From IMG/VR virus record IMGVR_UViG_3300042545_001134, positions 246,692 to 310,691 of that record: 64,000 nt of DNA; one strand, written 5' to 3'. Made by a program: the position numbers and the translations under genes. Below the pieces are notes generated by a model. It was not told the origin of the DNA. It searched no databases and was given only the letters and a program-made list of their open reading frames with translations. This document shows, piece by piece, positions 43,188-64,000 of this stretch. Each line of letters begins with the position of its first letter. Position 1 is the first letter of the stretch.

Positions 43188-43431
43188 AATGTTTTTTTAT
43201 CTGATAATATACACAATAAATACCAAATAAAAAACCCCGATTCCTCGGGGTTTAACTTAATTCAACAAAATAATATGTTAAAGTAATTTTTTTTCATATA
43301 TTCGTATCAAAATATATTCCGAATGAATAAATAAGACAATATGTCAGTTATATCTTTATACTAACTGAAAAAATGTCATCATTTTGTTTTTAGAATTATT
43401 TTTGTTATCTTTATTAAAAACACATTATATA

Positions 43432-45450
43432 ATGGCAGTAGATTTTTTCGAAGAGGGTCAGACCTCCACTCCAAAGAGGGGTAAAAAGGGTTCTACAACC
43501 CCAATCCTTGATAACTTTTCAAGGGATTTAAACAAACTTGCCGAAGAGGGTAAAATCGACCCTGTGATTGGTAGAGACAAAGAGGTAAAGAGAATCGCTC
43601 AGATTCTTTCAAGAAAGAAGAAAAACAATGTGGTTGTTGTTGGTGATGCCGGTGTTGGTAAATCTGCTCTTGTTGAGAAATTAGCATTGTTAATTGTTAA
43701 AGGTGAATGTCCAACCAATCTTTTGGAAAAAAGAATAATGTCGTTGGATTTAACTTCATTAGTTGCAGGTACAAAATACCGTGGACAGTTTGAGGAGAGA
43801 ATCAAGGCAATTTTAAATGAGTTACAACACGAACCAAATGTGATTGTCTTTATTGACGAATTACATACAATGATTGGTGCGGGTAATGCAAGTGGTTCAA
43901 TGGATGCCGCAAATATTCTTAAACCCGCATTGGCAAGAGGAGAAATTCAATGTATTGGTGCCACAACTTTTGATGAGTTTAAAAAACATATTGAGAAGGA
44001 TTCCGCATTAGTTAGACGTTTCCAAAAGATTATTTTAAAGGAACCGACTCACGAGGAAACCATTCAAATTTTGGATAACCTAAAAGATTCTTATGAAAGT
44101 TACCATAAAGTACACTACGAAGATGGTGTTGTTAATATAATTGTTAAACTTTGCGGTCGTTTCATCACGGATAGACAATTCCCCGATAAGGCAATTGATG
44201 TATTAGATGAATTGGGTTCAGATAAAAAAATCAACACTAAGGTTCCCGAAATAATTGAAAAACTAAAAAAAGAATCTGACGAACTTAAAGAAAAAAAGAT
44301 TCAAGTTGTAAAAAACCAAAACTACGAGCAGGCGGCGAAACTCAGAGATGAGGAACGTAAAATTCTAACCAAGTTAGAAGAAGAGAAAACATTATGGTTA
44401 GACAAACAAAAGGATAACAAAGTCCCTGTTTGTGTTGACGATGTTTATGAAATAATCTCACAAATGACAGGTGTCCCAATTACCAAATTGGATGATAGAG
44501 AAACTCAAAACCTATTAAAATTAGAAGAGAGGTTATCGGCGAAAGTTATTGGTCAGGAAGATGCGATTTCAATTATATCCAAATCAATCAGACGAAATAG
44601 GGTTGGTATTAAAGACACAAACAAACCAATTGGTTCGTTTATCTTTTTAGGTTCGACAGGTGTCGGTAAAACTTACCTCGCCAAGTCTATTGCGGAGTTG
44701 TTATTTGGTGACCCCGAAAAAGTGATTAGAGTAGACATGAGTGAGTTTATGGAAAAACATAATGTATCTCGTTTAATCGGTTCTCCTCCGGGTTATGTTG
44801 GTTATGATGAAGGTGGTCAATTAACTGAGAAGATTAAAAACAATCCATTCTCAGTAGTATTGTTCGATGAGATTGAAAAGGCACACAAAGACGTGTTTAA
44901 CATCCTACTTCAAATTTTAGATGAAGGACATTTAACGGATTCATTTGGTAGGAAGGTTAACTTTACCAATACCATCATTATTATGACCTCTAACGTAGGT
45001 GCAAAAAAAGTATCAGATTTCGGAGGTGGTGTTGGATTCACAACTAACTCAAGTGAGGAACAAAAACACGAGGTTAGGAAATCAATCATTCAAAAATCTT
45101 TGAAACAACATTTCAATCCCGAGTTTCTTAATCGTATTGATGATATTATTTTGTTTAATAAATTGAATGGTGATACTATTAATAAAATTATCGAAATTGA
45201 GTTAGGTAAATTACTCATTCGTTTAAAAGAAAAGAATTTCAATGTAGTATTTGATAAAAGTGTAATATCTCGAATTTCCGAGTTAAATATTCAAGAAGAA
45301 TATGGTGCACGACCAATTAAGAGAATCATTCAAAATCTTTGTGAGGATTTCCTCAGTGAAGAGATTTTAAGGGGTTCGATTAAGGAAAACGAACTTACAA
45401 CATTGAAATTTAAAGACGGTCAACTAAAAATATTTAAGAAATTGGTATAA
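43432..45450 (+). CDS. clpC: ClpC-type AAA+ chaperone lacking the N-terminal domain
   Basis: Two Walker A motifs (GDAGVGKS, GSTGVGKT), UVR-like QNYEQAAKLRDEE, RLIGSPPGYVGY, VGF loop. Confidence 0.92.
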   Translation: MAVDFFEEGQTSTPKRGKKGSTTPILDNFSRDLNKLAEEGKIDPVIGRDKEVKRIAQILSRKKKNNVVVVGDAGVGKSALVEKLALLIVKGECPTNLLEKRIMSLDLTSLVAGTKYRGQFEERIKAILNELQHEPNVIVFIDELHTMIGAGNASGSMDAANILKPALARGEIQCIGATTFDEFKKHIEKDSALVRRFQKIILKEPTHEETIQILDNLKDSYESYHKVHYEDGVVNIIVKLCGRFITDRQFPDKAIDVLDELGSDKKINTKVPEIIEKLKKESDELKEKKIQVVKNQNYEQAAKLRDEERKILTKLEEEKTLWLDKQKDNKVPVCVDDVYEIISQMTGVPITKLDDRETQNLLKLEERLSAKVIGQEDAISIISKSIRRNRVGIKDTNKPIGSFIFLGSTGVGKTYLAKSIAELLFGDPEKVIRVDMSEFMEKHNVSRLIGSPPGYVGYDEGGQLTEKIKNNPFSVVLFDEIEKAHKDVFNILLQILDEGHLTDSFGRKVNFTNTIIIMTSNVGAKKVSDFGGGVGFTTNSSEEQKHEVRKSIIQKSLKQHFNPEFLNRIDDIILFNKLNGDTINKIIEIELGKLLIRLKEKNFNVVFDKSVISRISELNIQEEYGARPIKRIIQNLCEDFLSEEILRGSIKENELTTLKFKDGQLKIFKKLV

Positions 45451-53808: not shown

Positions 53809-55716
53809 TTAGAGTTTTATAAATTGTTTTGTTAATTGGTTATTTTGATTGTTTAATACTAAATAGTAGTGACCCGTACTTGATGATGTCATGTCAATTT
53901 GTTTGTATCCCACTGTGGAACCTTGACCTGAAATTTCACCAATGTGTTTCACCAATCTACCTTGCATATCATAAATACTACCATTTAACTTAATATTCGG
54001 GTCGGGGAAAAGAACCTCAATCTCAAACCATCCTGTTACTGGATTTGGTCTAATAAGTGCGCTAATTTCTTTAAATTCACCGGGTAAAGTGGTTGGTGAC
54101 ATTTTATAGAAAAGTGTGGTCACTTGACTTGCTAAGTTTATTTCCAAATGGTCACCGTTATTATCAGATGCATCCATTAATTTTCTCACATAAATGTTTG
54201 TACTAACATCAACATTACCAATTGGACTAAATTTTATTTTAAATGGAGTGTGTGAACCAACCAATCCGTCTTTTTGTTGGTTGTTCATACCACCGAATCT
54301 GATGGTTCCCGCGGCCTCATCATGAGTTAAGTATTGTAACCAAGGACCACCATTAAAGTTGGAAACTATTTCATCAAATTTAACCTTTGTTTTATCGTAC
54401 TTCATCTCAAACTGTAAACCGTAGTTTTGGTCACCATTTGTGTTGATGTTAAATGGAACATACATTGGTTGTCCAAGTGATGATGTATTAGGAATTTCAA
54501 CATCTAATTTACCTTTATAAACCGCCTTAGCAACTAATACACCTGAACTGTTATAAACAGGAGATGAATAAGTTCTATCAACGTCACCTAATACAAAGTA
54601 CTTAATATCGATGTTAGTTAAGTTAGTGGTACCAATACTATCCACAACATAATTGTATGCGGTTGAGTGGTTTGTCCATTCTGTCCATTGGTTAGCGCCT
54701 AACACTAATGAATCAAATACATTTCTGTGGAATGCGTGAATCATTGTGGTTGTGTCAATCTTTTTAAGACCACTTATGTTTGCGTAAATCAAATAAGGGT
54801 CACCACCATCGATTTTACCGTTTTTGTTAACATCACCAATCAAATACGCCAAACCATGTTTCAAGTAGTTTTGTGATGGTGTTTGACTAACATCGGTAAC
54901 CGAATATTCATCATATGTTTTAACCGCATCAGATATAGTAACACCATAATCTCTAATAGTAGTCATACTATCTGCTGGGAATCTTACTGTTAATTTATAT
55001 TTTGTATTTTTATCTACGTTGTTAAGAGAGTAAAGACCTGCAGTATCCACTTGTTGTGAAGATACAAATTCACCTGTGTTAAATTTAGTACAAATGATTG
55101 TAGGTCTCATTCCAACACCTACCATAGTAGGTGGTAACCATACTTTACCACTAATAACCAAGTTACCCAAAAGTTCAAGATGCATATCCTGTACGTTCAA
55201 GGTCGCAATGTTATCACCAATTGTGGTACCATCAAATTTGAACATACGAGCCCAGTTAATTTCAAGACTATCCGCGTTGAAGTTTGATGTAACATCATTT
55301 ATGATAAATTTGTTATGTATTAAGAAAGTATCCGCAGTAATCTGAGAACCACTTGATAATACTAAGTAATTTCTGGCAACAGTGTAGTTAGTATCGGTTG
55401 CATATGTGTACGAACTTGTACTTGAGTTGTAACCCGAATACTTGTAGTCATTAAAGAACTTAATAGACAACGAAGGGGTCATACTACTAACGGTAGCGTC
55501 AACAGTTGTTGATACGTGAGTAAAAAGTTGTTTTCTATATTGAAAATCAACTTGGAAGGTTCTTATGTCCACAGATGACGATGCGTCATATTTGAACACC
55601 ACATCTAATGTGTCTCCTCTTTTAATGGTTTTATAGGCAACTGGGTTACCTATACCTTGTGCAAATGCCGACGATGATGTAATTAATACAACAAGGGCTA
55701 AAATTAGTTTTTTCAT
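53809..55716 (-). CDS. T9SS-tagged scaffold protein: cohesin-like, Ig-like, dockerin-like, cohesin-like, T9SS type A CTD
   Basis: Signal peptide; GDTLDV...FQVDFQY; GDVNKNGKIDGGD; VPF.I.....YGLQFEMKYD..KVKF; IRPNP...IYDMQGRLV...GHYYLVL...TKQFIKL. Confidence 0.8.
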   Translation of the reverse strand: MKKLILALVVLITSSSAFAQGIGNPVAYKTIKRGDTLDVVFKYDASSSVDIRTFQVDFQYRKQLFTHVSTTVDATVSSMTPSLSIKFFNDYKYSGYNSSTSSYTYATDTNYTVARNYLVLSSGSQITADTFLIHNKFIINDVTSNFNADSLEINWARMFKFDGTTIGDNIATLNVQDMHLELLGNLVISGKVWLPPTMVGVGMRPTIICTKFNTGEFVSSQQVDTAGLYSLNNVDKNTKYKLTVRFPADSMTTIRDYGVTISDAVKTYDEYSVTDVSQTPSQNYLKHGLAYLIGDVNKNGKIDGGDPYLIYANISGLKKIDTTTMIHAFHRNVFDSLVLGANQWTEWTNHSTAYNYVVDSIGTTNLTNIDIKYFVLGDVDRTYSSPVYNSSGVLVAKAVYKGKLDVEIPNTSSLGQPMYVPFNINTNGDQNYGLQFEMKYDKTKVKFDEIVSNFNGGPWLQYLTHDEAAGTIRFGGMNNQQKDGLVGSHTPFKIKFSPIGNVDVSTNIYVRKLMDASDNNGDHLEINLASQVTTLFYKMSPTTLPGEFKEISALIRPNPVTGWFEIEVLFPDPNIKLNGSIYDMQGRLVKHIGEISGQGSTVGYKQIDMTSSSTGHYYLVLNNQNNQLTKQFIKL

Positions 55717-56213
55717 AGTAGTTTATCGAGTAAGTTTATTGTTGTTTTCTTTATTGCAGAACTTGCGGATTCTTGATTGAATTTACCTCCCTCATCAATA
55801 ATGATTGTTGAAGTTGATATTTCAGTCGATTTACCTTCCGCAAATTCAGTTTTAATTTTTTTATCTCCTTTATAGAGAACACCCTTCATTCTAATGACGG
55901 TGGTACTTTTATCTTGGTGAAATACAGCAATTCCTGATTTAGTATTGACGATATCAAAGAATATTAATTCAACCTGTATTGAGTATTCGGCCTTTTCTTT
56001 TACCCCAATCAAGACCAAACTATCTTGTTCATTTATTATTTCTTGAACAATGTTTTTTACTCCAAACGCCAAATTTTTGTTACCAACAAGAGTACCAACA
56101 CGGATGTTGTTAATCACGGGTTCAACAAAAATAGTCGGTCCTGTCTGAGCAGTTACGCTCAAAAAGGGACATAGGAATAGCACAGAAAAAATTATACTTT
56201 TGATAAGTCTCAT
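55713..56213 (-). CDS. Secreted protein (possible CsgG/TolB-N-like alpha-beta fold)
   Basis: Signal peptide; GVKNIVQE and FNQES.S.AIKK echo the 255-aa CsgG-like protein. Confidence 0.55.
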   Translation of the reverse strand: MRLIKSIIFSVLFLCPFLSVTAQTGPTIFVEPVINNIRVGTLVGNKNLAFGVKNIVQEIINEQDSLVLIGVKEKAEYSIQVELIFFDIVNTKSGIAVFHQDKSTTVIRMKGVLYKGDKKIKTEFAEGKSTEISTSTIIIDEGGKFNQESASSAIKKTTINLLDKLL

Positions 56214-56237
56214 GGTTAAACAGTGGAATAAATTAGA

Positions 56238-56498
56238 TTATTCAGAGATTTCGTCTTCCGATTTTTTATTCTTGTTGTTAATCCACTTATCGACAGATGC
56301 GATACCGAATGAACCTAACGTGATTACTAAAAATCCGTCAAAGATAAATTCGTTAATTAGTAATTCTTTACCCATCCAACCTGTAATAAGGTCAACGAAT
56401 AGAGAGATTACCATCATGAGAAACGCGATGAATCCCACTACTGATTTCTCGTTAATTGTGTTGTTATCGTTAAATAACTGGCTGAAAAATTTTTTCAT
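56238..56498 (-). CDS. Small two-TM membrane protein
   Basis: Two hydrophobic helices; first gene of the operon. Confidence 0.7.
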   Translation of the reverse strand: MKKFFSQLFNDNNTINEKSVVGFIAFLMMVISLFVDLITGWMGKELLINEFIFDGFLVITLGSFGIASVDKWINNKNKKSEDEISE

Positions 56499-56632
56499 AG
56501 TTGTAGTTTGTGTTTGTTTTTATGTTTGGTTATCAATAAATATCCCGGCAAAGTGTTAAGGAAAAAAAATTCGAGAAAATCAAGTCTAAAAAAATTTTAT
56601 ATCTTTTTTGATACTTTTCTTTGTTTTTTGCA

Positions 56633-56650
56633 TACTTATTGTTATCTTTG
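56633..56650 (+). promoter_or_regulatory. Promoter elements for tRNA array 1 (TACTTAT and TATCTTTG)
   Basis: Late-like TAYTTAT at 56633-56639 and Bacteroidota TAnnTTTG at 56643-56650. Confidence 0.6.
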
Positions 56651-56681
56651 TAAAAGATTTAAAAACTAAATAAAAAATTCA

Positions 56682-56771
56682 ATGACACGCAACACACATA
56701 CAATGTCGTTTACTATCTGTTCGAAATGGGCGGAAGTGATTGATATTGCCATGTCTCGAGGTGTCTTGTAA
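56682..56771 (+). CDS. Putative attenuator leader peptide 1 (29 aa, MTRNTHTMSFTICSKWAEVIDIAMSRGVL)
   Basis: ATG after an A-rich tract; contains TCTCGAGGT (56754-56762), the exact complement of the terminator 5' arm. Confidence 0.7.
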   Translation: MTRNTHTMSFTICSKWAEVIDIAMSRGVL

Positions 56772-56800
56772 GTTGTTTAGTTTTAAAACGATATTAAAGG

Positions 56801-56830
56801 AACCTCGAGAGAAATCTCGGGGTTTTTTTT
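56801..56830 (+). terminator. Intrinsic terminator/attenuator upstream of tRNA array 1
   Basis: AACCTCGAGA-GAAA-TCTCGGGGTT plus U tract, ending 6 nt before tRNA-Ala. Confidence 0.88.
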
Positions 56831-56836
56831 GTTTTA

Positions 56837-56909
56837 GGGCTGTTGGTATAGTTGGCTAACACACGACATTTGCACTGTCGAATCCCCGGTTCGAAGCCGG
56901 GACGGTCCA
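56837..56909 (+). tRNA. tRNA-Ala(TGC)
   Basis: Cloverleaf, CGACA-TT TGC AC-TGTCG, G3:U70. Confidence 0.93.
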
Positions 56910-56940
56910 CAAAGTGTTCTTTGACATATTGGTTTAATTT

Positions 56941-57013
56941 GGTACCGTAGCTCAGTTGGTAGAGCGTCGCCCTGAAGAGGCGAGCGTCACTGGTTCGAAT
57001 CCGGTCGGTACCA
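56941..57013 (+). tRNA. tRNA-Phe(GAA)
   Basis: TCGCC-CT GAA GA-GGCGA. Confidence 0.93.
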
Positions 57014-57018
57014 CATTT

Positions 57019-57092
57019 GTCTCCGTAGCTCAGTTGGTTAGAGCACCTCACTTTTAATGAGGGAGTCACGCGTTCGAGTCGCGTCGGGGACA
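57019..57092 (+). tRNA. tRNA-Lys(TTT)
   Basis: CCTCA-CT TTT AA-TGAGG. Confidence 0.93.
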
Positions 57093-57094
57093 CA

Positions 57095-57229
57095 AAGGTT
57101 GATTGGGGAATGATTATGTCGATAGTTCGAGAGTGAATACTGACTGACATAATCGGAGTTTGGAGGTGTTCACCTAAGTAATGCCAATCATAAAAGTAGA
57201 TGTCCACTGAACCATCTTCTACTTTCCTT
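57095..57229 (+). ncRNA. Unassigned structured RNA A
   Basis: Helices TGATTGG/CCAATCA, GATTATGTC/GACATAATC, AAAGTAGA/TCTACTTT. Confidence 0.6.
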
Positions 57230-57234
57230 TATTT

Positions 57235-57307
57235 AGTTCCGTAGCTCAGTTGGGAGAGCATCTGCCTTACATGCAGAGGGTCACTGGTTCGAACCCAGTC
57301 GGAACTA
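57235..57307 (+). tRNA. tRNA-Val(TAC)
   Basis: TCTGC-CT TAC AT-GCAGA. Confidence 0.93.
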
Positions 57308-57316
57308 CAAATACAC

Positions 57317-57388
57317 ATGGGTGTGGTGCAATGGTTAGCATAAGAGTCTCCAAAACTTTTGATGGGAGTTCGAGTCTCTCCACCCGTG
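57317..57388 (+). tRNA. tRNA-Trp(CCA)
   Basis: AGAGT-CT CCA AA-ACTTT. Confidence 0.9.
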
Positions 57389-57409
57389 CAAACTTTAAAA
57401 ACAAATAAC

Positions 57410-57838
57410 ATGGAAAGAGATGACAACATCGATGCCGTCAAAATGAGATTTGAGGCGGAGAAAATGAAATTAAGGGAAGAAAGGGAAAAAACAATTAAAC
57501 AGTATTGGGAAAATTTACCAAAACTTAATAATCCTGAAGATGTACCAACACTCCCAAGAGTTGATGAAAAACAATGGAGGGAGTTTTATGTCCCAAAATT
57601 AATCGAAGCGGGAGCAATCCCAAAAAATGATTTAATTCATGGTCAAATTTATATTGGTGAACATAGAAACACAACCATCGCAAGATGGAATCAAGAAACA
57701 GATAAATTTGTACACATGAGATATAAGTTTGGTTGGAGAGAAGATGAATGTAATCACTTTGAGGATGATAATGGATTTGCGTTGTTTGTACCAATTAGAT
57801 TGGGTACACAAGAAGAATGGGATGAAAGAATTAAATAA
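57410..57838 (+). CDS. Hypothetical protein within the tRNA array
   Basis: Start re-assigned to ATG 57410 because the track start lies inside tRNA-Trp. Confidence 0.75.
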   Translation: MERDDNIDAVKMRFEAEKMKLREEREKTIKQYWENLPKLNNPEDVPTLPRVDEKQWREFYVPKLIEAGAIPKNDLIHGQIYIGEHRNTTIARWNQETDKFVHMRYKFGWREDECNHFEDDNGFALFVPIRLGTQEEWDERIK

Positions 57839-57845
57839 TTAAGTT

Positions 57846-57919
57846 ACTCTCGTAGTTCAATGGATTAGAACATTTCACTACGGATGAAAGGGTTGGGAGT
57901 TCGAGTCTCTCCGAGAGTA
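57846..57919 (+). tRNA. tRNA-Arg(ACG)
   Basis: TTTCA-CT ACG GA-TGAAA. Confidence 0.92.
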
Positions 57920-57925
57920 CGATAA

Positions 57926-57995
57926 GGTCAGTTTGGTCGTGGAGGCCGGTTAGTCTGCAAAATTAACGGAGTTGGTTCGATTCCAACATTGACCT
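57926..57995 (+). tRNA. tRNA-Cys(GCA)
   Basis: TTAGT-CT GCA AA-ATTAA, U73, short D-loop. Confidence 0.85.
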
Positions 57996-58001
57996 CAATA
58001 T

Positions 58002-58079
58002 GGTGGATATAGTTCAGTTGGTTAGAACGTCTGATTGTGGTTCAGAAGGTCGCCGGTTCGAATCCGGTTATTCACCCCA
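58002..58079 (+). tRNA. tRNA-His(GTG) with G-1 and encoded CCA
   Basis: TCTGA-TT GTG GT-TCAGA; G-1:C73. Confidence 0.93.
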
Positions 58080-58082
58080 TAT

Positions 58083-58156
58083 TGGAATATAACTCAGTTG
58101 GTTAGAGTGTCATCCTGATACGGTGAAAGTCGGTGGTTCGAGTCCACCTATTCCAA
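58083..58156 (+). tRNA. tRNA-Ile(GAT)
   Basis: TCATC-CT GAT AC-GGTGA. Confidence 0.92.
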
Positions 58157-58163
58157 CAAACAT

Positions 58164-58237
58164 TGCGGGGTGGTCTGGAGAGGTTCCAGCTCGGTCTCAT
58201 AAGCCGAATCACGTGGGTTCGATTCCCACTCCCGCAA
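58164..58237 (+). tRNA. tRNA-Met(CAT)
   Basis: TCGGT-CT CAT AA-GCCGA; initiator-like acceptor TGCGGGG; atypical D arm. Confidence 0.85.
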
Positions 58238-58301
58238 CTTTTTAAAAACATTTTGAAGTGTGACTTTTATTATGTATATTTGAAATGTTCTTTGATTTAA
58301 T

Positions 58302-58378
58302 GCCTCCTTAGCTCAGTTGGCCGGAGCGCCTCACTTGTAATGAGGATGTCGGCGGTTCGAATCCGTCAGGAGGCTCCA
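58302..58378 (+). tRNA. tRNA-Thr(TGT) with encoded CCA
   Basis: CCTCA-CT TGT AA-TGAGG. Confidence 0.93.
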
Positions 58379-58380
58379 TT

Positions 58381-58453
58381 GGTCCCGTGGTTGAATGGTT
58401 ACAATTCCACCCTGTCACGGTGCGAGGTACGGGTTCGAATCCCGTCGGGACCG
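58381..58453 (+). tRNA. tRNA-Asp(GTC)
   Basis: CACC-CT GTC AC-GGTG, G73. Confidence 0.92.
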
Positions 58454-58455
58454 CG

Positions 58456-58660
58456 TTGAGTAAGAGATACTCACTAAGTTTGGTAACGTTCTTTCAAGAT
58501 GTTATAGTTGTCGCCTTCCACAACTTTAAAGAGGAGGTCGTCGGAGTATGGTCGTAACAAAACCACCGAGTATGTTTGACGTTTATGTGCGGGTAAGACC
58601 GTCTCGTGTTTTCAATACGAAAACAGAAGAAAAATCTACTCATTGGAATCTCAGGTGGGA
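58456..58660 (+). ncRNA. Unassigned structured RNA B
   Basis: Hairpins TGAGTA/TACTCA, TAACGTT/GATGTTA, AGTTGT/ACAACT, TGTTTTC/GAAAACA; GC-richer than flanks; no ORF. Confidence 0.5.
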
Positions 58661-58665
58661 AAATT

Positions 58666-58751
58666 GGAAGGATGGCAGAGTTGGTCTATCGCATCGGTCT
58701 TGAAAACCGAAGTACTGAAAGGTACCGTGGGTTCGAATCCTACTCCTTCCG
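58666..58751 (+). tRNA. tRNA-Ser(TGA)
   Basis: TCGGT-CT TGA AA-ACCGA, long variable arm. Confidence 0.93.
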
Positions 58752-58797
58752 CAAACGATTGTTGTTCTTTGACAAATTAAAAACAAAATTAAAAGAT

Positions 58798-59088
58798 ATG
58801 GATACATTATCATTTATTTTAGGAATGTCCTCGGTGGTGGTTATCGCAATTGCGGTAGTTGCTGTTAAAGGATTTTTTAAGGTCAGAAATGTTGAGAAAC
58901 ACTTCAATGAATACAAACAAAACTTTACAGTTGAGTTTGATAATAGAACAAAAGATATTCATGATAGTATGAATCGTGTGAATGATGAATTACATCGTAG
59001 AATTGATAACACAGAAAGAGAAGTCTTTTCCCAATTAGACTCTCGATTAGATAAATTGGAAACTAAGTTAACGAGCCGTAAGGCATAA
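58798..59088 (+). CDS. Single-TM coiled-coil protein
   Basis: Start re-assigned to ATG 58798 (MDTLSFILG...). Confidence 0.75.
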   Translation: MDTLSFILGMSSVVVIAIAVVAVKGFFKVRNVEKHFNEYKQNFTVEFDNRTKDIHDSMNRVNDELHRRIDNTEREVFSQLDSRLDKLETKLTSRKA

Positions 59089-59122
59089 TAAATAAATCGT
59101 TAAAGACAACAATCGTTTATAT

Positions 59123-59194
59123 GGCCCTTTCGACTATCGGTTAGGTCGTCAGGTTTTCATCCTGAAAAGTCGGGTTCGATTCCCGGAGGGGCTA
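59123..59194 (+). tRNA. tRNA-Glu(TTC)
   Basis: TCAGG-TT TTC AT-CCTGA. Confidence 0.92.
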
Positions 59195-59217
59195 CAATGG
59201 AATTAAATTAAACCAAT

Positions 59218-59457
59218 ATGTTAGAAAGAATATTAGGAATTTACGAAGATGAAGGATTACTTATCGCTGATGGATTCGATGATGCAGTAATTGGAATTGA
59301 TGAATCGTCAATGAGAGTAATCTATTCGGTTGCCAAATGTCTCCACATTTTAGAACGTGATATGGAGATGATTGATGCGATTGAATACTTTGAATTTAAC
59401 GTAAAAGGCGCATACGTTGGAGACAAGACTCCGATATGGTGTGAAGATTTTTTTTAA
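59218..59457 (+). CDS. Conserved phage hypothetical protein
   Basis: ADGFDDAVIG...EYFEFNV.GAYVG..TP motif seen in many phages. Confidence 0.8.
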   Translation: MLERILGIYEDEGLLIADGFDDAVIGIDESSMRVIYSVAKCLHILERDMEMIDAIEYFEFNVKGAYVGDKTPIWCEDFF

Positions 59458-59459
59458 TT

Positions 59460-59669
59460 ATGATTAATTATTTAGGTTACTTCGCAACATTCTTAACTCT
59501 ACTTTCTTTTTCTTTTAAAAATATTACAAAATTAAGAATTGTTAGTTCAACGTCATGTGTGTTTTGGATTGTTTATGGGTGTTTAAAAAATGATTATCCA
59601 ATCATCAGCACAAATGTTTTAATAATCATAATACATGTGTACTACCTACTAAAAACAAAAAATAAATAA
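59460..59669 (+). CDS. YgjV/PQ-loop-like small membrane protein
   Basis: LGY.AT...L.SF......KLR......FWIVYG.....P.I.TN. Confidence 0.7.
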   Translation: MINYLGYFATFLTLLSFSFKNITKLRIVSSTSCVFWIVYGCLKNDYPIISTNVLIIIIHVYYLLKTKNK

Positions 59670-59676
59670 ACTTTTG

Positions 59677-59695
59677 TATATTTGTATATACTTAT
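59677..59695 (+). promoter_or_regulatory. Promoter elements for tRNA array 2 (TATATTTG and TACTTAT)
   Basis: TAnnTTTG at 59677-59684, TAYTTAT at 59689-59695. Confidence 0.6.
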
Positions 59696-59702
59696 TAAAA
59701 CA

Positions 59703-59801
59703 ATGATGAACTTGGATAACATACAACAACTGTCTAACAACCCGATAAGTGGTAATGGGAGAGGTACGTATTTATGTCACCCAAGTTCGGAATCCAAATG
59801 A
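59703..59801 (+). CDS. Putative attenuator leader peptide 2 (32 aa, MMNLDNIQQLSNNPISGNGRGTYLCHPSSESK)
   Basis: Same layout as leader 1; GTTCGG (59785-59790) is complementary to CCGAAC in the terminator 5' arm. Confidence 0.65.
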   Translation: MMNLDNIQQLSNNPISGNGRGTYLCHPSSESK

Positions 59802-59830
59802 ATGTAAGAATTTTAAACTCTATACTCACG

Positions 59831-59872
59831 AGACCCGAACATCCCAAAAAGATTTTCGGGTTTTTTGTTTTT
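59831..59872 (+). terminator. Intrinsic terminator/attenuator upstream of tRNA array 2
   Basis: ACCCGAA-C-ATC-loop-GAT-T-TTCGGGT plus U tract. Confidence 0.82.
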
Positions 59873-59929
59873 AGAGATATTCTTTTGTATATTTGTGATG
59901 TAGTTCTTTGACATGTTGGTGAAAAAAAT

Positions 59930-60014
59930 GCTGAGGTGATGGAATGGTAGACATGACAGACTTAAAATCTGTTGAGTAGTAATGCTCGTGTGGGTTCGAC
60001 TCCCATCCTCAGTA
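59930..60014 (+). tRNA. tRNA-Leu(TAA)
   Basis: ACAGA-CT TAA AA-TCTGT, long variable arm. Confidence 0.93.
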
Positions 60015-60015
60015 C

Positions 60016-60218
60016 AAAAAACAATACCTTACATAAGACGGATTAGCACCGTTGAAAGGAACCTTGGCTTCAATCGGAGTAATTACCGTAACCGAAGTAA
60101 TAATGACCCAAGGTACTATGTGATGGACCCTGCTCTATGGTGCACTCATAACAGGTGAACAGTAAACTATGTTCAATCAAATTCAAAACCACGGTGAGCG
60201 TGGAAGGTATTGTTTTTT
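60016..60218 (+). ncRNA. Unassigned structured RNA C (multibranch, ~200 nt)
   Basis: Perfect 15-bp closing helix AAAAAACAATACCTT/AAGGTATTGTTTTTT enclosing five helices. Confidence 0.7.
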
Positions 60219-60225
60219 ATTTAAC

Positions 60226-60300
60226 GCACCCGTAGCTCAGCTGGATTAGAGCAACTGCCTTCTAAGCAGTAGGTCACAGGTTCGAATCCTGTCGGGTGTA
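60226..60300 (+). tRNA. tRNA-Arg(TCT)
   Basis: ACTGC-CT TCT AA-GCAGT. Confidence 0.93.
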
Positions 60301-60341
60301 CAAATGGAGTCCTTTACTTTATCCTTTTATATTCATATAAT

Positions 60342-60986
60342 ATGGAAAAAAGTATGAGATATAAAAAAAAATTAAACAGTGAGTGTAAATGGTGTGGGGA
60401 AACCTTTAATGTAGAAGATAAACCAAAAGGTTTCATGGCAAATCATAGTAGATGGTGTGTAAAAAACCCAAATAAAAATGATTACATGAAAACTCTATCA
60501 AAAAATAGAAAATCAATTACCGAAGAATCCAGAAAATTGGCAGGAAAATCGATATCGAAAGCATGGGAAAACGGTTCGTATTCTCATGTTAAGTTTAATA
60601 GCTTCCAAGGAAGAACACACACCGAAGAAGCGAAAGAAAAAATAAGAAGAGCACAACTATTATTAAATTACCGAAGACTTAGAAAACATCAAGTAATGTA
60701 TAAAGATGTGTTATTAGATAGTAGTTGGGAATTAGCGTTAGCAATCCGTTTAGATGAATTAAACATAAAATGGATACGACCTGAACGCATTATGTGGATT
60801 GATAAAAATAATTTAAAACGTTCATATTATCCTGATTTTTATTTAAACGATTATGATATGTATTTGGACCCAAAAAATCCAGCGGCATATCAAAATCAAA
60901 TTGAAAAAATTGAAATTTTAAAAAACACAATTCCAAATTTAAAGTTCATTTTAAGTTTGAAAGAATGTAAGGAGTTTAACATATAG
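60342..60986 (+). CDS. Free-standing homing-endonuclease-like protein (Zn finger, NUMOD3, PD-(D/E)xK)
   Basis: CKWC...H..WC; GRTHTEEAKEKIR; DSSWE...YYPDFYL......DPK. Confidence 0.8.
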   Translation: MEKSMRYKKKLNSECKWCGETFNVEDKPKGFMANHSRWCVKNPNKNDYMKTLSKNRKSITEESRKLAGKSISKAWENGSYSHVKFNSFQGRTHTEEAKEKIRRAQLLLNYRRLRKHQVMYKDVLLDSSWELALAIRLDELNIKWIRPERIMWIDKNNLKRSYYPDFYLNDYDMYLDPKNPAAYQNQIEKIEILKNTIPNLKFILSLKECKEFNI

Positions 60987-61058
60987 GGAATTAGCGTAGT
61001 TCGGTATCGCGCTTGGTTTGGGACCAAGAGGTCGTCAGTTCGAATCTGGCATTCCCTA
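60985..61058 (+). tRNA. tRNA-Pro(TGG)
   Basis: CTTGG-TT TGG GA-CCAAG. Confidence 0.92.
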
Positions 61059-61063
61059 CAAAT

Positions 61064-61137
61064 TCCTCGATAGCTCAGTCGGTTAGAGCATTTGACTGTT
61101 AATCAAAGGGTCCCAAGTTCGAGTCTTGGTCGGGGAG
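61064..61137 (+). tRNA. tRNA-Asn(GTT)
   Basis: TTTGA-CT GTT AA-TCAAA. Confidence 0.93.
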
Positions 61138-61146
61138 CAAATAAAT

Positions 61147-61220
61147 ACCTTCGTAGGAGAACTGGTATATCCACTGCACTTAGGATGCAGATTTTGTGGG
61201 TTCGAATCCCACCGAAGGTA
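61147..61220 (+). tRNA. tRNA with TAG (Leu) anticodon and short variable loop
   Basis: CTGCA-CT TAG GA-TGCAG; 5-nt variable loop; A73. Confidence 0.85.
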
Positions 61221-61225
61221 CAAAT

Positions 61226-61353
61226 AGTCAGGTGGCGGAAAGATTACGGCGCTGGGATAAAAACTGGGGCCTTGATAATCGTGGTAGACGCCCTGTTTCT
61301 AGACGATGGCCGAAAGCAAGATTTCGGTACAGGTTCAAATCCTGTCCTGACTA
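61226..61353 (+). ncRNA. tRNA-like RNA with D-loop insertion and irregular anticodon arm
   Basis: Acceptor AGTCAGG/CCTGACT, T arm ACAGG-TTCAAAT-CCTGT, split GCGGAA...TGGTAGACGC D arm. Confidence 0.75.
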
Positions 61354-61363
61354 CAAACATTAT

Positions 61364-61445
61364 TGGAAGGTGGGTGAGTGGTTAAAACCGACAGACTGTA
61401 AATCTGTTCCCATTGGGTACGGGGGTTCAAATCCCTCCCTTCCAA
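61364..61445 (+). tRNA. tRNA-Tyr(GTA)
   Basis: ACAGA-CT GTA AA-TCTGT, long variable arm. Confidence 0.93.
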
Positions 61446-61461
61446 CTTAAAAATTATTATT

Positions 61462-62037
61462 ATGGCAAGAAGTAAAATTTTATCTGACTTATTAAAATCC
61501 ATAACTCCTGAAATGGAAGAAAAGTGGAAACAGGAAAGAATGAATTATAAAAAAAGTTTAAGTATCGAATATCAATTGGGGTATTATGTTGGGTTGGAAA
61601 TTGTACATCGTTACTTACCAACACTATCAACTGATATGATTCAATCGAATTATGTAATTGAGGTATCTCAGATGGATTCTGAGGAGAACAAACGATTAGA
61701 AGTGGAATGGTTCACAACCACCAAACACGGTGGAGAATGGGATGGTAAAAGTGATAACGGTAATAAAGAAAGATGGGATGATTTATTTGACCACAATAAA
61801 ATGTTGGAGGTAAAATATCTACCACATACTTTAACATGTCACATGGATGTTTTGAACATCAACGACATGAAACAATTTAAAGAGGGAATAAGAACAAGTC
61901 TATGGGATTGTGATATGTGTTCATATAATATCGATATCGAAAACATAAAAATTTATGACGATGAGGATATTAGATTTACAATTATTGAATTCACATTGGA
62001 TTCATTAAATGATACTAAAACAGATGAAGAGATTTAA
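61462..62037 (+). CDS. Hypothetical protein
   Basis: 191 aa ORF. Confidence 0.7.
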   Translation: MARSKILSDLLKSITPEMEEKWKQERMNYKKSLSIEYQLGYYVGLEIVHRYLPTLSTDMIQSNYVIEVSQMDSEENKRLEVEWFTTTKHGGEWDGKSDNGNKERWDDLFDHNKMLEVKYLPHTLTCHMDVLNINDMKQFKEGIRTSLWDCDMCSYNIDIENIKIYDDEDIRFTIIEFTLDSLNDTKTDEEI

Positions 62038-62713
62038 GATTATATCAGTAGTGGTGGTAACACTAACAATTTTATTTGCGTCACTCATGTTAATTTCAAG
62101 TCAATCCTTGAAAAGTGTGAAGGTAAAAAAAGATGTGGTTAAATCACCGTCTTTAAATGTGGATACGGTTGTTGATGTGAATGGTAAACATGTTTTGTTT
62201 ATTGGTGATTCTCACACCGCAAATCATGACTTTGGTTGGCAAGTTATTCTGTGTCAGAAAACGGGGATGAAAATGAATAACACCGCAGTTATAGGTAAAC
62301 ACTTACCATGGATGGTATCTGTCGCAAGACAAACAATTTCACCCTATTATGATTATTGTTTTATCTACGGTGGTGCAAATGATATCCATGGAAATCGAAA
62401 TCCATATTCTGTTGTTAAAGACGTTCAGAAGATTGTTGAGATGTGCACAATGAATGGGGTTGAGGCAATTGTTCTTACAGGGTTTAATGCAGAAGAATGT
62501 GTTAGACCGTTAAAAGGACAAGAATTTTATCCAAAGGCGTACACTCGTTATCAAAAAATATTGATGGATAGTATCGTAGATGCAACTGTTGTTGATACAA
62601 GAGTGGTGGTGAGAACGGATTGCGGTGATTGGACTTGTCACATGCACCCAACGGGACATAGAAAAGTGGCAAACGCAGTTATTAAACAAATGAACTTTAA
62701 AACAAAAAACTGA
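62024..62713 (+). CDS. SGNH/GDSL hydrolase with N-terminal membrane anchor
   Basis: FIGDSHT, GGAND, D..CH...GH. Confidence 0.85.
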   Translation: MKRFKIISVVVVTLTILFASLMLISSQSLKSVKVKKDVVKSPSLNVDTVVDVNGKHVLFIGDSHTANHDFGWQVILCQKTGMKMNNTAVIGKHLPWMVSVARQTISPYYDYCFIYGGANDIHGNRNPYSVVKDVQKIVEMCTMNGVEAIVLTGFNAEECVRPLKGQEFYPKAYTRYQKILMDSIVDATVVDTRVVVRTDCGDWTCHMHPTGHRKVANAVIKQMNFKTKN

Positions 62714-63318
62714 TGACAAAATATACCTTAGTAATCGGTGGTTGGGAGTTGAACGCTTCCGGTCATCAACTCACAAACGAAGAAGTTGTAAAACTTAGAA
62801 ACCACATGTCTGAAAATGGTATCGATGATTTAAGTTCAATGGGATTTGACATTGAAGAAGTTTTAAATTATGATATATTCGATGCGAATATGTGGGTGAT
62901 GGATAAACCTCTTTGGAATGGTACACCACACTTCATGGTATTCAAATCGGATGACATGGAAAATAGAGTTCTTGAATTCGAAGAAAAAGAAATGTCTGAC
63001 CATTATGAAGTAGATGAAGATGCAGATTACGGTGACACATTTAACGGATTTCCAATTGAAGGTGAGGAGGAAAATATCATCCTTTGGTTAGAAGAAAATA
63101 AAGGATGGGTATGTGACTTTGAATTTGAGTCTGATGAAATTCCAACTGCAAAAGATTTCAGTATGGTTGGTGGTTGTATTGAAACACCTAACGGAGATTG
63201 GGACTTTATTGATAAAATGTACTTCAAGGGTAAAGAACTTCAGATGGACTTTAACCACCAAGAAACTCGAGGTAAGGCATTAACAATAGAACTTTGGACA
63301 TTAGAAAACACCAAATAA
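62713..63318 (+). CDS. Acidic hypothetical protein
   Basis: 201 aa ORF. Confidence 0.7.
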   Translation: MTKYTLVIGGWELNASGHQLTNEEVVKLRNHMSENGIDDLSSMGFDIEEVLNYDIFDANMWVMDKPLWNGTPHFMVFKSDDMENRVLEFEEKEMSDHYEVDEDADYGDTFNGFPIEGEEENIILWLEENKGWVCDFEFESDEIPTAKDFSMVGGCIETPNGDWDFIDKMYFKGKELQMDFNHQETRGKALTIELWTLENTK

Positions 63319-63319
63319 A

Positions 63320-63535
63320 ATGAACGAAAATTTAGATAACAACTTAAAATCAATTATTGCTGAAAAAATTGAAAACTCCGGATTTTATAAACTTCAAGGA
63401 GTAGCCCCTGACGGATTCAAATTATTACCAATTGAGGTAATCGAAGATTTGAAAGAATTTGAAAATTGGAAAGAGTTCAAACACAACGAACAATGGCTTG
63501 ACGCTCAGTCAAAAATCTATATGAAAGACAAATAA
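63320..63535 (+). CDS. Hypothetical protein
   Basis: 71 aa ORF. Confidence 0.65.
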   Translation: MNENLDNNLKSIIAEKIENSGFYKLQGVAPDGFKLLPIEVIEDLKEFENWKEFKHNEQWLDAQSKIYMKDK

Positions 63536-63598
63536 TTAAAAATATTTGTTTATTTAAAAAAATGATTGTATCTTTGTATTACTAAAAGAAATAAAGAT

Positions 63599-63856
63599 AT
63601 GCCAAAATTTAGCACCTACGTAGATGTTGATATCCATGAATTTATGGGAGAATGTAGCAAAAGAGAAATTAAAGAACTTATTGATTATTTGGTTCAAGAT
63701 GGACACATTAATTCAAGTTCAATCATCGTCCCAAGTAAGAAAAACTCATTGATGGAAATTGAACACATCGAAACATGTAATAAATTATCATCAGTTTATC
63801 TTAGAATGAATCGTGAAGACTGGGAGTTAATAAAACAAATCGCATCGAAATATTAA
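63599..63856 (+). CDS. Hypothetical protein
   Basis: ATG 63599 downstream of TATCTTTG (63569-63576). Confidence 0.65.
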   Translation: MPKFSTYVDVDIHEFMGECSKREIKELIDYLVQDGHINSSSIIVPSKKNSLMEIEHIETCNKLSSVYLRMNREDWELIKQIASKY

Positions 63857-63868
63857 TCATAATTAAAT

Positions 63869-63940
63869 TGGGCATTAGCTCAGCGGTAGAGCTCTCGACT
63901 GTTAATCGAGTGGTCCTAGGTTCAAATCCTAGATGCCCAG
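63869..63940 (+). tRNA. tRNA-Asn(GTT), second divergent copy
   Basis: CTCGA-CT GTT AA-TCGAG, G73. Confidence 0.92.
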
Positions 63941-63948
63941 CAATATAT

Positions 63949-64000
63949 TGCGATATTGGTGTAAGGTCGGTCTCATGAGCCGAGTTGGTAGATATACCCC
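63949..64000 (+). tRNA. Partial CAT-anticodon tRNA-like element (cut by the window end)
   Basis: TCGGT-CT CAT GA-GCCGA arm; D arm unclear; T arm not visible. Confidence 0.35.

Follow-up and report, generated by a model that had tools for sequence, protein, structure and literature searches.

Why large phages carry arrays of tRNA genes, and when they use them, has been debated for decades, with proposals that include codon compensation, replacement of degraded host tRNAs and escape from anticodon nucleases. A 64,000-nucleotide stretch of an uncultured phage contig (positions 246,692 to 310,691 of IMG/VR record IMGVR_UViG_3300042545_001134, hereafter the window) raises the question of whether such genes might be switched on when translation runs short of tRNAs. 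In this large phage of Bacteroidota, each of two tRNA gene clusters is preceded by a short leader ORF, predicted to be translated, and a terminator, and each leader spells out almost exactly the codons read by the tRNAs behind it. The original prediction held that the first of these units is a codon-sampling attenuator, in which ribosome stalling at any of the listed codons would turn on the downstream tRNAs. To address whether this is so, we checked each sequence element, searched for relatives of the unit, and tested statistically the correspondence between leader codons and tRNA genes.

All of the elements described in the original prediction are present, in the order promoter, leader ORF, antiterminator strand, intrinsic terminator and tRNA-Ala (Table 1). 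The promoter is of the Bacteroidota type, with a -7 box of the TAnnTTTG class separated by a 19-nt spacer from an upstream TTTG. The -7 box and its flank are conserved in most relatives, though the bare motif is not enriched in this AT-rich window, with 81 matches against 96 expected. The terminator ends in an 8-T run, and tRNA-Ala starts 6 nt later, leaving no room for a promoter of its own. The upstream genes are divergent, so this terminator cannot be the end of another operon. Codons 25-27 of the leader are the exact reverse complement of the terminator 5' arm, and none of 300 shuffled leaders paired as well. One point in the original prediction required correction. Pro and Tyr had been described as absent from the array, but this is true only for the first sub-array; the array does not end with tRNA-Glu. 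The window holds 21 tRNAs, and tRNA-Pro and tRNA-Tyr are found in a second sub-array that sits behind its own leader and terminator.

Table 1. Positions of the two predicted attenuators, the tRNA sub-arrays and associated elements within the window
Feature	Coordinates	Strand	Description
Promoter 1	56620-56650	+	Bacteroidota sigma-A type; -33 TTTG at 56620-56623, -7 box TATCTTTG at 56643-56650
Leader ORF 1	56682-56771	+	29 codons plus TAA (56769-56771); codons 2-21 form the sensing part, with conserved core H-T-M-S-F-T-I-C-S-K-W-A-E/D
Hairpin within leader ORF 1	56717-56733	+	Conserved, 7 bp (codons 12-18); possible RNA polymerase pause or 1:2-type element
Region 2	56754-56762	+	5' strand of the antiterminator (codons 25-27); pairing extends to about 56752-56767
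Terminator 1	56802-56830	+	Region 3 (56802-56810), loop GAAA, region 4 (56815-56823), T-run to 56830
tRNA sub-array 1	56837-59195	+	Ala (starts at 56837), Phe, Lys, Val, Trp, Arg-ACG, Cys, His, Ile-GAT, Met, Thr, Asp, Ser-TGA, Glu, with small ORFs interspersed
Promoter 2, -7 box	59677-59684	+	TATATTTG, in front of leader 2
Leader ORF 2	59703-59801	+	32 codons plus TGA; rich in Asn, Leu, Pro, Gly, Gln, Tyr, Arg-AGA, Ile-ATA and Ser-AGT codons; antiterminator strand GTTCGG at 59785-59790
Terminator 2	59833-59866	+	5' arm 59833-59843, 3' arm 59851-59861, T-run to 59866
tRNA sub-array 2	59930-61446	+	As far as the window shows it: Leu-TAA, Arg-TCT, Pro (60985), Asn, Leu-TAG, Tyr (61364)
Additional tRNA-Asn	63869-63941		
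17-nt motif	56916-56932	+	GTTCTTTGACATATTGG, conserved, role unknown
17-nt motif	59903-59919		
17-nt motif	58764-58780		Weaker

We next asked whether the unit is conserved. It occurs in about 23 distinct variants in uncultured phage contigs of IMG/VR, the neighboring proteins of which are down to about 40-48% identical to those of the window. The leader ORF is kept in these variants, its indels are in frame (+6 nt in one variant and +3 nt in another), and variable sites in the core fall mostly at third codon positions (10 third, 6 second, 3 first), which supports that the ORF is coding. However, much of the nucleotide conservation of the core, including its purine-only third positions, can be explained by the hairpin within the ORF and cannot be credited to codon sensing alone. 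In an RNAalifold consensus all 23 sequences keep every pair of this hairpin, with two pairs changing on one side only, and in the window it forms part of a longer leader hairpin (-39 kcal/mol).

The competing helices are also conserved. The isolated antiterminator (2:3) hairpin of the window folds at -22.8 kcal/mol, and the 2:3 helix is present in all 23 variants, at -11 to -20 kcal/mol and with p <= 0.05 against shuffled leaders in every one. Notably, compensatory changes on both sides occur at four pairs of the 2:3 helix and at four pairs of the terminator (3:4) helix. To examine the geometry of the proposed switch, we folded the transcript with a ribosome masking successive codons. Before region 4 exists, the 2:3 helix has a probability of 0.89-0.99 for A-site codons 2-21, 0.39 at codon 22 and 0.00 from codon 23 to the stop. 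Thus, by this geometry a ribosome finishing the ORF would mask the antiterminator strand while an upstream stall would leave it free, and the same holds for the second attenuator, though in the clade with leaders of 32-34 codons region 2 ends 15-20 nt before the stop, and a terminating ribosome would mask it only marginally. At equilibrium, the full-length leader prefers the terminator for most stalled positions (terminator-stem probability about 0.9 or more from codon 6), and the switch must therefore be kinetic. In addition, without any ribosome the transcript truncated before region 4 also forms 2:3, leaving the untranslated state ambiguous.

Strikingly, codons 2-21 of leader 1 contain a codon decodable by each of the 14 tRNAs of sub-array 1, as checked at the anticodon level, with Asn the only extra amino acid. 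This is far beyond chance, as none of 15,678 equal-length windows in the phage's own genes reaches 14 (mean 6.3, maximum 12). The second unit, which has the same design, lists the codons of the second sub-array instead. Codons 2-24 of leader 2 sample all 11 array-2 tRNA species known from relatives, which 0 of 15,531 gene windows do. Its antiterminator strand lies 7-13 nt before the stop in all variants, its terminator is conserved in all relatives that carry leader 2, and TATCTTTG or TATATTTG occupies the place of its -7 box in relatives. When the leaders were held fixed and tRNA species shuffled between the two arrays, the observed match (score 23, against 1.1 +/- 6.4) was reached in 0 of 20,000 shuffles for the window (p < 1e-4), and in at most 2 under the other three settings; in 11 relatives p ranged from 0 to 0.007. 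The match reaches codon level, with Arg CGN versus AGA, Ile ATC/ATT versus ATA, and Ser TCR versus AGT partitioned between the leaders.

Interestingly, composition is kept when positions change. Thr and Met swap places, F10I comes with a new Phe codon at position 22, and I12T comes with two inserted Ile codons. K15I occurs only in phages whose array 1 lacks tRNA-Lys, and these keep Lys codons at positions 2 and 5; the clade whose leader lost Val mostly has tRNA-Val in array 2 or absent from array 1. The tracking between phages is nevertheless imperfect. A Gln codon sits at position 3 of many leader 1 variants although tRNA-Gln is in array 2, one relative keeps three Thr codons without tRNA-Thr in array 1, two others lack Phe, Lys and Ser tRNAs in array 1 but their leaders keep those codons, and another has tRNA-Val but no Val codon.

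Collectively, these data support the interpretation in the original prediction, and the three comparative tests it proposed, of ORF conservation, helix covariation and correspondence of leader codons with the array, all came out positive. The most likely mechanism, to which we assign a probability of roughly 0.7 in the absence of experimental evidence for translation, termination or read-through, is ribosome-mediated transcription attenuation acting as feedback from tRNA supply. In this model, transcription starts at a host-type promoter and the leader is translated as it is made. A ribosome that runs through to codons 23-29 or the stop covers region 2, so that region 3 pairs with region 4 and transcription ends before tRNA-Ala. 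If instead the ribosome is delayed anywhere in codons 2-21, region 2 is free when region 3 emerges, the 2:3 helix forms, the terminator cannot, and RNA polymerase reads into the 14-tRNA sub-array. A shortage of any one of the listed tRNAs, or generally slow elongation, would thereby raise transcription of the whole set, and ample supply would shut it down, with the second unit doing the same for its sub-array. However, the conserved 17-nt motif just downstream of both attenuators could be a promoter, which would give attenuator-independent expression of most tRNAs. Most tRNAs are represented by only one codon, and sensitivity to a single codon is unproven here, though single codons measurably change his-leader attenuation (PMC4046918). 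A wider reading, which we consider only slightly more likely than not, is that large phages regulate their own tRNA genes by demand, opening a terminator whenever any listed tRNA is limiting through depletion, host shut-off or cleavage by anticodon nucleases. This would be the first case of tRNA genes controlled by ribosome-sensed tRNA supply and would also constitute a built-in sensor of tRNA-targeting host defense, though anticodon-nuclease attack as a trigger is pure speculation. Such an element would show that these arrays are deployed on demand, and the leaders could also serve as compact, programmable multi-tRNA sensors. Only a Bacteroidota host is indicated by the data; that it is Flavobacterium remains an inference.

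Other explanations are less well supported. It is possible, though unlikely, that the unit is a real leader-peptide attenuator in which codon identity is not the signal, and that it senses overall translation rate or transcription-translation coupling, or encodes an arrest peptide that responds to a small molecule or to ribosome state. Indeed, the order of the 13-residue core is almost invariant, as is typical of arrest peptides, its I-C-S-K-W stretch may resemble the S-K-W of TnaC, the hairpin in the ORF could act only as a pause signal, and one codon per tRNA is a weak sensor. However, this does not explain why two leaders in one genome have nearly disjoint codon sets that each match the array behind them, nor why lost residues reappear elsewhere in the leader. 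Moreover, Pfam, including the Tna leader family, gave no hit even at E = 10, and the distance from Trp to the stop varies from 13 to 17 residues between clades, unlike TnaC-type arrest at a fixed distance.

Somewhat less probable still is that the ORF and terminator form a self-contained small gene, encoding a micropeptide or a structured RNA of roughly 170 nt, and that the tRNAs are transcribed from their own promoters, for example the GTTCTTTGACAT motif or the TATATTTG boxes at 58275 and 59888. The leader transcript is strongly structured (-60.8 kcal/mol, z = -7.4), in one relative the equivalent of terminator 2 follows tRNA-Glu directly with no leader, as an ordinary operon terminator would, and small arrays in L020-L023 (our designations for related loci) are driven directly by a promoter. 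The 17-nt motif lies just downstream of each attenuator, about 15-18 nt before a tRNA or about 20 nt before an ORF. Yet tRNA-Ala, or its degenerate equivalent, starts so close to terminator 1 that it can only be made by read-through, and a stand-alone gene leaves unexplained both the competing strand, which lies inside the last codons of the ORF and covaries with the terminator, and the codon match to the arrays. No Rfam family matches the leader, the best being His_leader at 21.8 bits against a threshold of 49 (E = 4.1). A chance resemblance, in which an accidental ORF precedes an ordinary terminator in an unremarkable intergenic region, is very unlikely. Although the bare promoter consensus is common in AT-rich DNA and short ORFs are abundant, the conservation, in-frame indels, covariation and empirical and permutation p-values, at or below 1e-4 for the window, argue strongly against it.

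The leader-peptide attenuators of amino-acid operons, trpL, hisL, pheL, leuL and the multivalent thrL and ilvL, share with this unit a promoter-proximal short ORF, mutually exclusive antiterminator and terminator helices that share one strand, and, in the proposed mechanism, read-out of ribosome position at regulatory codons, and ilvL and thrL already sense more than one amino acid. However, those leaders use runs of 2-8 codons of one to three amino acids and control biosynthetic enzymes, whereas here about 14 (leader 1) or about 11-13 (leader 2) different codon types occur, mostly once each, the putatively regulated genes are the tRNAs that read those codons, in a phage, and region 2 lies inside the last codons of the ORF rather than after the stop. 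In the whiB7 5' leader of mycobacteria, stalling in a uORF leads to antitermination, depletion of many different amino acids, tRNAs and synthetases activates it, and the coding content of the uORF determines what is sensed (PMC10274678). The whiB7 uORF is Ala-enriched and variable and controls a transcription factor for a stress and resistance regulon; the present leaders, which are not homologous to it, are near one-of-each lists matched to downstream tRNA genes and come as two complementary units. As is proposed here, T-box riboswitches couple the supply of a specific tRNA to read-through of a terminator without a protein regulator, but they bind uncharged tRNA directly through a specifier codon, need no translation, sense one tRNA each and control synthetase or amino-acid genes, mainly in Firmicutes, and no T-box match was found here. 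The arrest-peptide leaders TnaC, ErmCL, SecM and MifM are short conserved peptides whose translation status controls downstream expression, but they act through the nascent chain in the exit tunnel at a fixed stall site, whereas the conserved property here is codon composition matched to tRNA genes. Finally, phage tRNA arrays have been considered as codon compensation or as counter-defense against tRNA-cleaving systems (PMC10264068). That work concerns tRNA sequence and function, and we found no prior description of translation-sensed control of their transcription.

The order of the tRNA genes in sub-array 1, as identified with ARAGORN and Rfam, is kept in relatives. The contigs of the window phage end about 150 nt beyond the window, but in relatives the second sub-array continues with Ile-TAT/Met, Val, Thr, Gly-GCC, Gly-TCC, Gln and Ser-GCT.

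Analysis of the sequence confirmed the arrangement described in the original prediction, in which a short ORF and a terminator precede a tRNA array. A Bacteroidota-type −7 box, TATCTTTG, with an upstream TTTG element, is followed by a 29-codon ORF, a hairpin with a GAAA loop and eight T's, and then tRNA-Ala. Codons 25–27 of the ORF are the perfect reverse complement of the 5′ arm of the terminator, and none of 300 shuffled leaders paired as well. ARAGORN and Rfam find 21 tRNAs in the window, the first 14 of which are those listed in the original prediction. At the anticodon level, codons 2–21 contain a codon for each of these 14 tRNAs, with Asn as the only extra amino acid. However, one correction is needed. 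The original prediction held that Pro and Tyr are absent from the array, but tRNA-Pro and tRNA-Tyr do exist further on, so that the 14-tRNA array is really the first of two sub-arrays. The sigma-70 scan and the bare TAnnTTTG motif were uninformative with regard to the promoter in this AT-rich DNA.

Coordinates of the two predicted attenuators and of neighboring features (window positions unless a relative is named)
Feature	Position	Strand	Remarks
FtsH-like ATP-dependent protease gene	43384-45450	+	phrog_4871, 804 bits
Gene for 635-aa protein	53809-55716	-	Por_Secre_tail, 32.9 bits
Upstream gene	55713-56213	opposite to the leader
Upstream gene	56238-56498	opposite to the leader
TTTG element	56620-56623
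−7 box of unit 1	56643-56650		TATCTTTG
Leader ORF 1	ATG at 56682, TAA at 56769-56771		29 codons
Hairpin inside leader ORF 1	56717-56733		7 bp
Region 2 (antiterminator strand)	56754-56762		codons 25–27
Terminator 1, 5′ arm (region 3)	56802-56810
Terminator 1, 3′ arm (region 4)	56815-56823		eight T's ending at 56830
tRNA-Ala	starts at 56837
First 14 tRNAs	up to 59195
17-nt motif	56916-56932, 58764-58780, 59903-59919		GTTCTTTGACATATTGG
Small protein gene in sub-array 1	57410-57838
Small protein gene in sub-array 1	58798-59088
Small protein gene in sub-array 1	59218-59457
Small protein gene in sub-array 1	59460-59669		MtN3/SWEET-like half-transporter, 25.7 bits
Second unit	59677-59866
Leader ORF 2	59703-59801		32 codons
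Antiterminator strand of unit 2	59785-59790		GTTCGG, 9 nt before the stop
Terminator 2	59833-59866
tRNA-Leu(TAA)	starts at 59930
Rfam freshwater-1 RNA	60119-60181		73.4 bits, threshold 72
tRNA-Pro	60985
tRNA-like gene with insertion	61226-61354		Rfam tRNA score 30.4 bits
tRNA-Tyr	61364
Decayed copy of the leader region	L092:2214-2423
tRNA with anticodon CTA	L105, reverse-complement coordinate about 11559		labeled Pyl by ARAGORN

The three genes upstream of the leader are on the other strand and diverge from it, and terminator 1 therefore cannot belong to another operon. The window is phage DNA, encoding a portal, a large terminase and a full-length FtsH-like protease. The portal is T4-like and gives only distant relatives, being 37% identical to that of Flavobacterium phage immuto and 42% identical to that of a Microcystis phage. 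A protein with a type IX secretion C-terminal sorting domain, together with the promoter type, points to a Bacteroidota host, though the genus is not established.

To examine whether the element is conserved, IMG/VR was searched with the neighboring protein and with a degenerate core pattern, which gave about 23 distinct versions of the leader region (the relatives are denoted here by L numbers). In some of these phages the neighboring protein is only 40–48% identical to that of the window. All keep an ORF of 29–34 codons with the core H-T-M-S-F-T-I-C-S-K-W-A-E/D. Within the core, variable sites are at third codon positions in 10 cases, second in 6 and first in 3, and length differences inside the ORF are multiples of three. 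The ORF therefore evolves as coding sequence. In contrast, blastn of the region and tblastn of the leader and of the neighboring protein against 50,697 phage records revealed no relative, with only tRNA hits, and a scan of 185,579 reference bacterial and archaeal genomes with the core pattern gave 12 hits, all of which are chance matches inside unrelated ORFs. A metagenome scan, for which the pattern was too loose, returned 120 stretches, of which only L182 is genuine.

Every variant has a leader segment that pairs with the 5′ arm of the terminator, at −11 to −20 kcal/mol. Because MAFFT put the antiterminator strand of the two clades, and of L049 and L087, out of register, pairs were counted with anchored coordinates. 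With these registers, helix 2:3 has both-side compensatory changes at four pairs (C-G/T-A, T-A/C-G, G-C/A-T, A-T/G-C), and helix 3:4 also has them at four pairs. RNAalifold recovers the terminator with covariation. In addition, a 7-bp hairpin inside the ORF is kept in all sequences and may act as a pause or 1:2 element. This hairpin explains part of the nucleotide conservation. Indeed, purine-only third positions in four-fold boxes resembled an anticodon-specific constraint, but they are also required by the hairpin, and from codon usage alone the pattern is only about p = 0.04; hence, we do not count it as evidence. In L063, L074, L082, L084, L090, L098, L102 and L107, which belong to the 32–34-codon clade, an extra small AT-rich hairpin spans the leader stop codon. 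Its stem sequence differs between variants while pairing is kept, and it is absent from the clade of the window. L092 carries a decayed copy in which the leader has lost the segment holding region 2, the terminator has lost its T-run and a different tRNA follows. It looks like a natural "constitutive" variant.

To model the effect of the ribosome, 28 nt were masked around each A-site position. Before region 4 is transcribed, helix 2:3 forms with probability 0.89–0.99 for A-site codons 2–21, 0.39 at codon 22, and 0 from codon 23 to the stop, which is the interval assumed in the original prediction. At equilibrium, however, the complete leader prefers the terminator, and folding of the full leader does not by itself predict antitermination on stalling. 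The choice must therefore be kinetic. As only the co-transcriptional approximation predicts the switch, we regard the energetics as compatible with it rather than as proof. The untranslated state is also ambiguous in the folding models, and in the longer clade region 2 lies 15–20 nt before the stop.

The codon list in the leader is not due to chance. In the phage's own genes (16,707 codons), 20-codon windows sample on average 6.3 of the 14 array-1 tRNAs and never more than 12, whereas the leader samples 14, which 0 of 15,678 windows achieve. A second unit of the same design, with a −7 box, a 32-codon ORF, an antiterminator strand at the ORF end and a terminator, precedes the second sub-array, and it too is conserved in relatives. 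Its conserved core is made of Asn, Leu, Pro, Gly, Gln, Tyr, Arg-AGA, Ile-ATA and Ser-AGT codons, and the tRNAs behind it are Leu-TAA, Arg-TCT, Pro, Asn, Leu-TAG and Tyr. The contigs of the window phage end about 150 nt past the window, but in relatives with complete arrays Ile-TAT/Met, Gly-GCC, Gly-TCC, Gln and Ser-GCT follow. Codons 2–24 of leader 2 sample all 11 of these species, which 0 of 15,531 windows achieve.

We next asked whether each leader matches its own array by holding both leaders fixed and shuffling the tRNA species between the two arrays. In the window, the observed match score was 23 against 1.1 ± 6.4. None of 20,000 shuffles reached it under the default setting, and at most 2 did under the other three settings. 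The result is similar in L097, L049, L090, L105, L114, L007, L008, L013, L018 and L019 (p = 0–0.002) and in L115 (p = 0.007), and it holds with strict or relaxed wobble rules and with or without the last eight codons. The split reaches the codon level within one amino acid, with Arg being CGN in leader 1 and AGA in leader 2, Ile being ATC/ATT in leader 1 and ATA in leader 2, and Ser being TCR in leader 1 and AGT in leader 2. These phages share ancestry, so this is essentially one strong observation that has been maintained over long divergence, not twelve independent ones.

Where a core residue changes, the lost codon type usually reappears elsewhere in the sensing part; composition is kept when positions change. 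Thr and Met swap places in L006 and L016. Phe10 becomes Ile in L007 and L008, with a Phe codon at position 22, and Ile12 becomes Thr in L009, L105 and L106, with two Ile codons inserted upstream. Lys15 becomes Ile only in L063, L074, L114 and L115, whose array 1 lacks tRNA-Lys and which keep Lys codons at positions 2 and 5. The 32-codon clade has no Val codon in the sensing part, and in most of its members tRNA-Val is in array 2 or missing from array 1, while leader 2 of that clade carries extra Thr and Val codons. However, there are exceptions. A Gln codon sits at position 3 of many leader 1 variants, Thr codons are kept in L090 without an array-1 tRNA-Thr, L063 has tRNA-Val but no Val codon, and L114 and L115 lack several tRNAs whose codons remain in their leaders.

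On the basis of these sequence data, and in the absence of experimental evidence, we propose that the unit is a ribosome-mediated attenuator acting as negative feedback on tRNA supply. In this model, smooth translation leads to masking of region 2 and termination, while a delay at any listed codon leads to antitermination and transcription of the tRNA set. The literature supports its plausibility: single codons measurably shift his-leader attenuation (PMC4046918), and the whiB7 uORF responds to depletion of many amino acids, tRNAs and synthetases according to its coding content (PMC10274678). The idea that anticodon nucleases are the trigger is attractive in the light of PMC10264068, but it remains pure speculation on which our data do not bear. 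A conserved 17-nt motif, GTTCTTTGACATATTGG, which occurs only in the tRNA region, bears on how much of each array depends on the attenuator. It follows both attenuators, coming after tRNA-Ala in unit 1 and directly before tRNA-Leu in unit 2. It lies 15–18 nt before tRNA-Phe and tRNA-Leu(TAA), and it also lies about 20 nt before the ORF at 58798. It is found in the same places in L008, L097, L105, L049, L090 and L026. The motif may be a promoter, in which case most tRNAs also have attenuator-independent expression, or a processing site, in which case it does not affect the model.

By its proposed mechanism, the unit belongs with trp/his-type leader-peptide attenuators, the structural criteria for which were tested and fulfilled. 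It is not a member of any curated leader family, as an Rfam search of 56000-64000 at a permissive E-value found only sub-threshold His_leader and trpB hits for the leader, and a Pfam search with both leader peptides found nothing. It differs in three ways: it uses one-of-each codon logic, it comes as two complementary units, and it controls, in our model, tRNA genes in a virus. Full-text literature searches found no description of such control.

In many relatives (L009–L019, L049, L063 and others), the first element after terminator 1 is a degenerate tRNA-Ala(TGC)-like sequence with a mismatched acceptor stem, which ARAGORN does not call. It is nevertheless conserved, and the leader keeps its Ala codon; it might serve as an RNase P punctuation mark. 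In the window, an Rfam freshwater-1 RNA lies between tRNA-Leu(TAA) and tRNA-Arg(TCT). Relatives with a short Leu-Arg spacer seem to lack it, which suggests that this orphan motif is a phage tRNA-array passenger. A tRNA-like gene with a good acceptor stem and T arm carries a roughly 34-nt insertion in the anticodon region and is called Phe(aaa) by ARAGORN with introns. It fills a gap between tRNA-Leu(TAG) and tRNA-Tyr that is only about 10 nt in relatives. At the far end of the array of the relative L105, ARAGORN calls a tRNA with anticodon CTA, an amber reader that may be a suppressor tRNA. Finally, small protein genes are interspersed in tRNA sub-array 1 and would be cotranscribed with it. 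One of these encodes a MtN3/SWEET-like half-transporter, while another, at 58798-59088, looks from its translation like a membrane-anchored, possibly coiled-coil protein.
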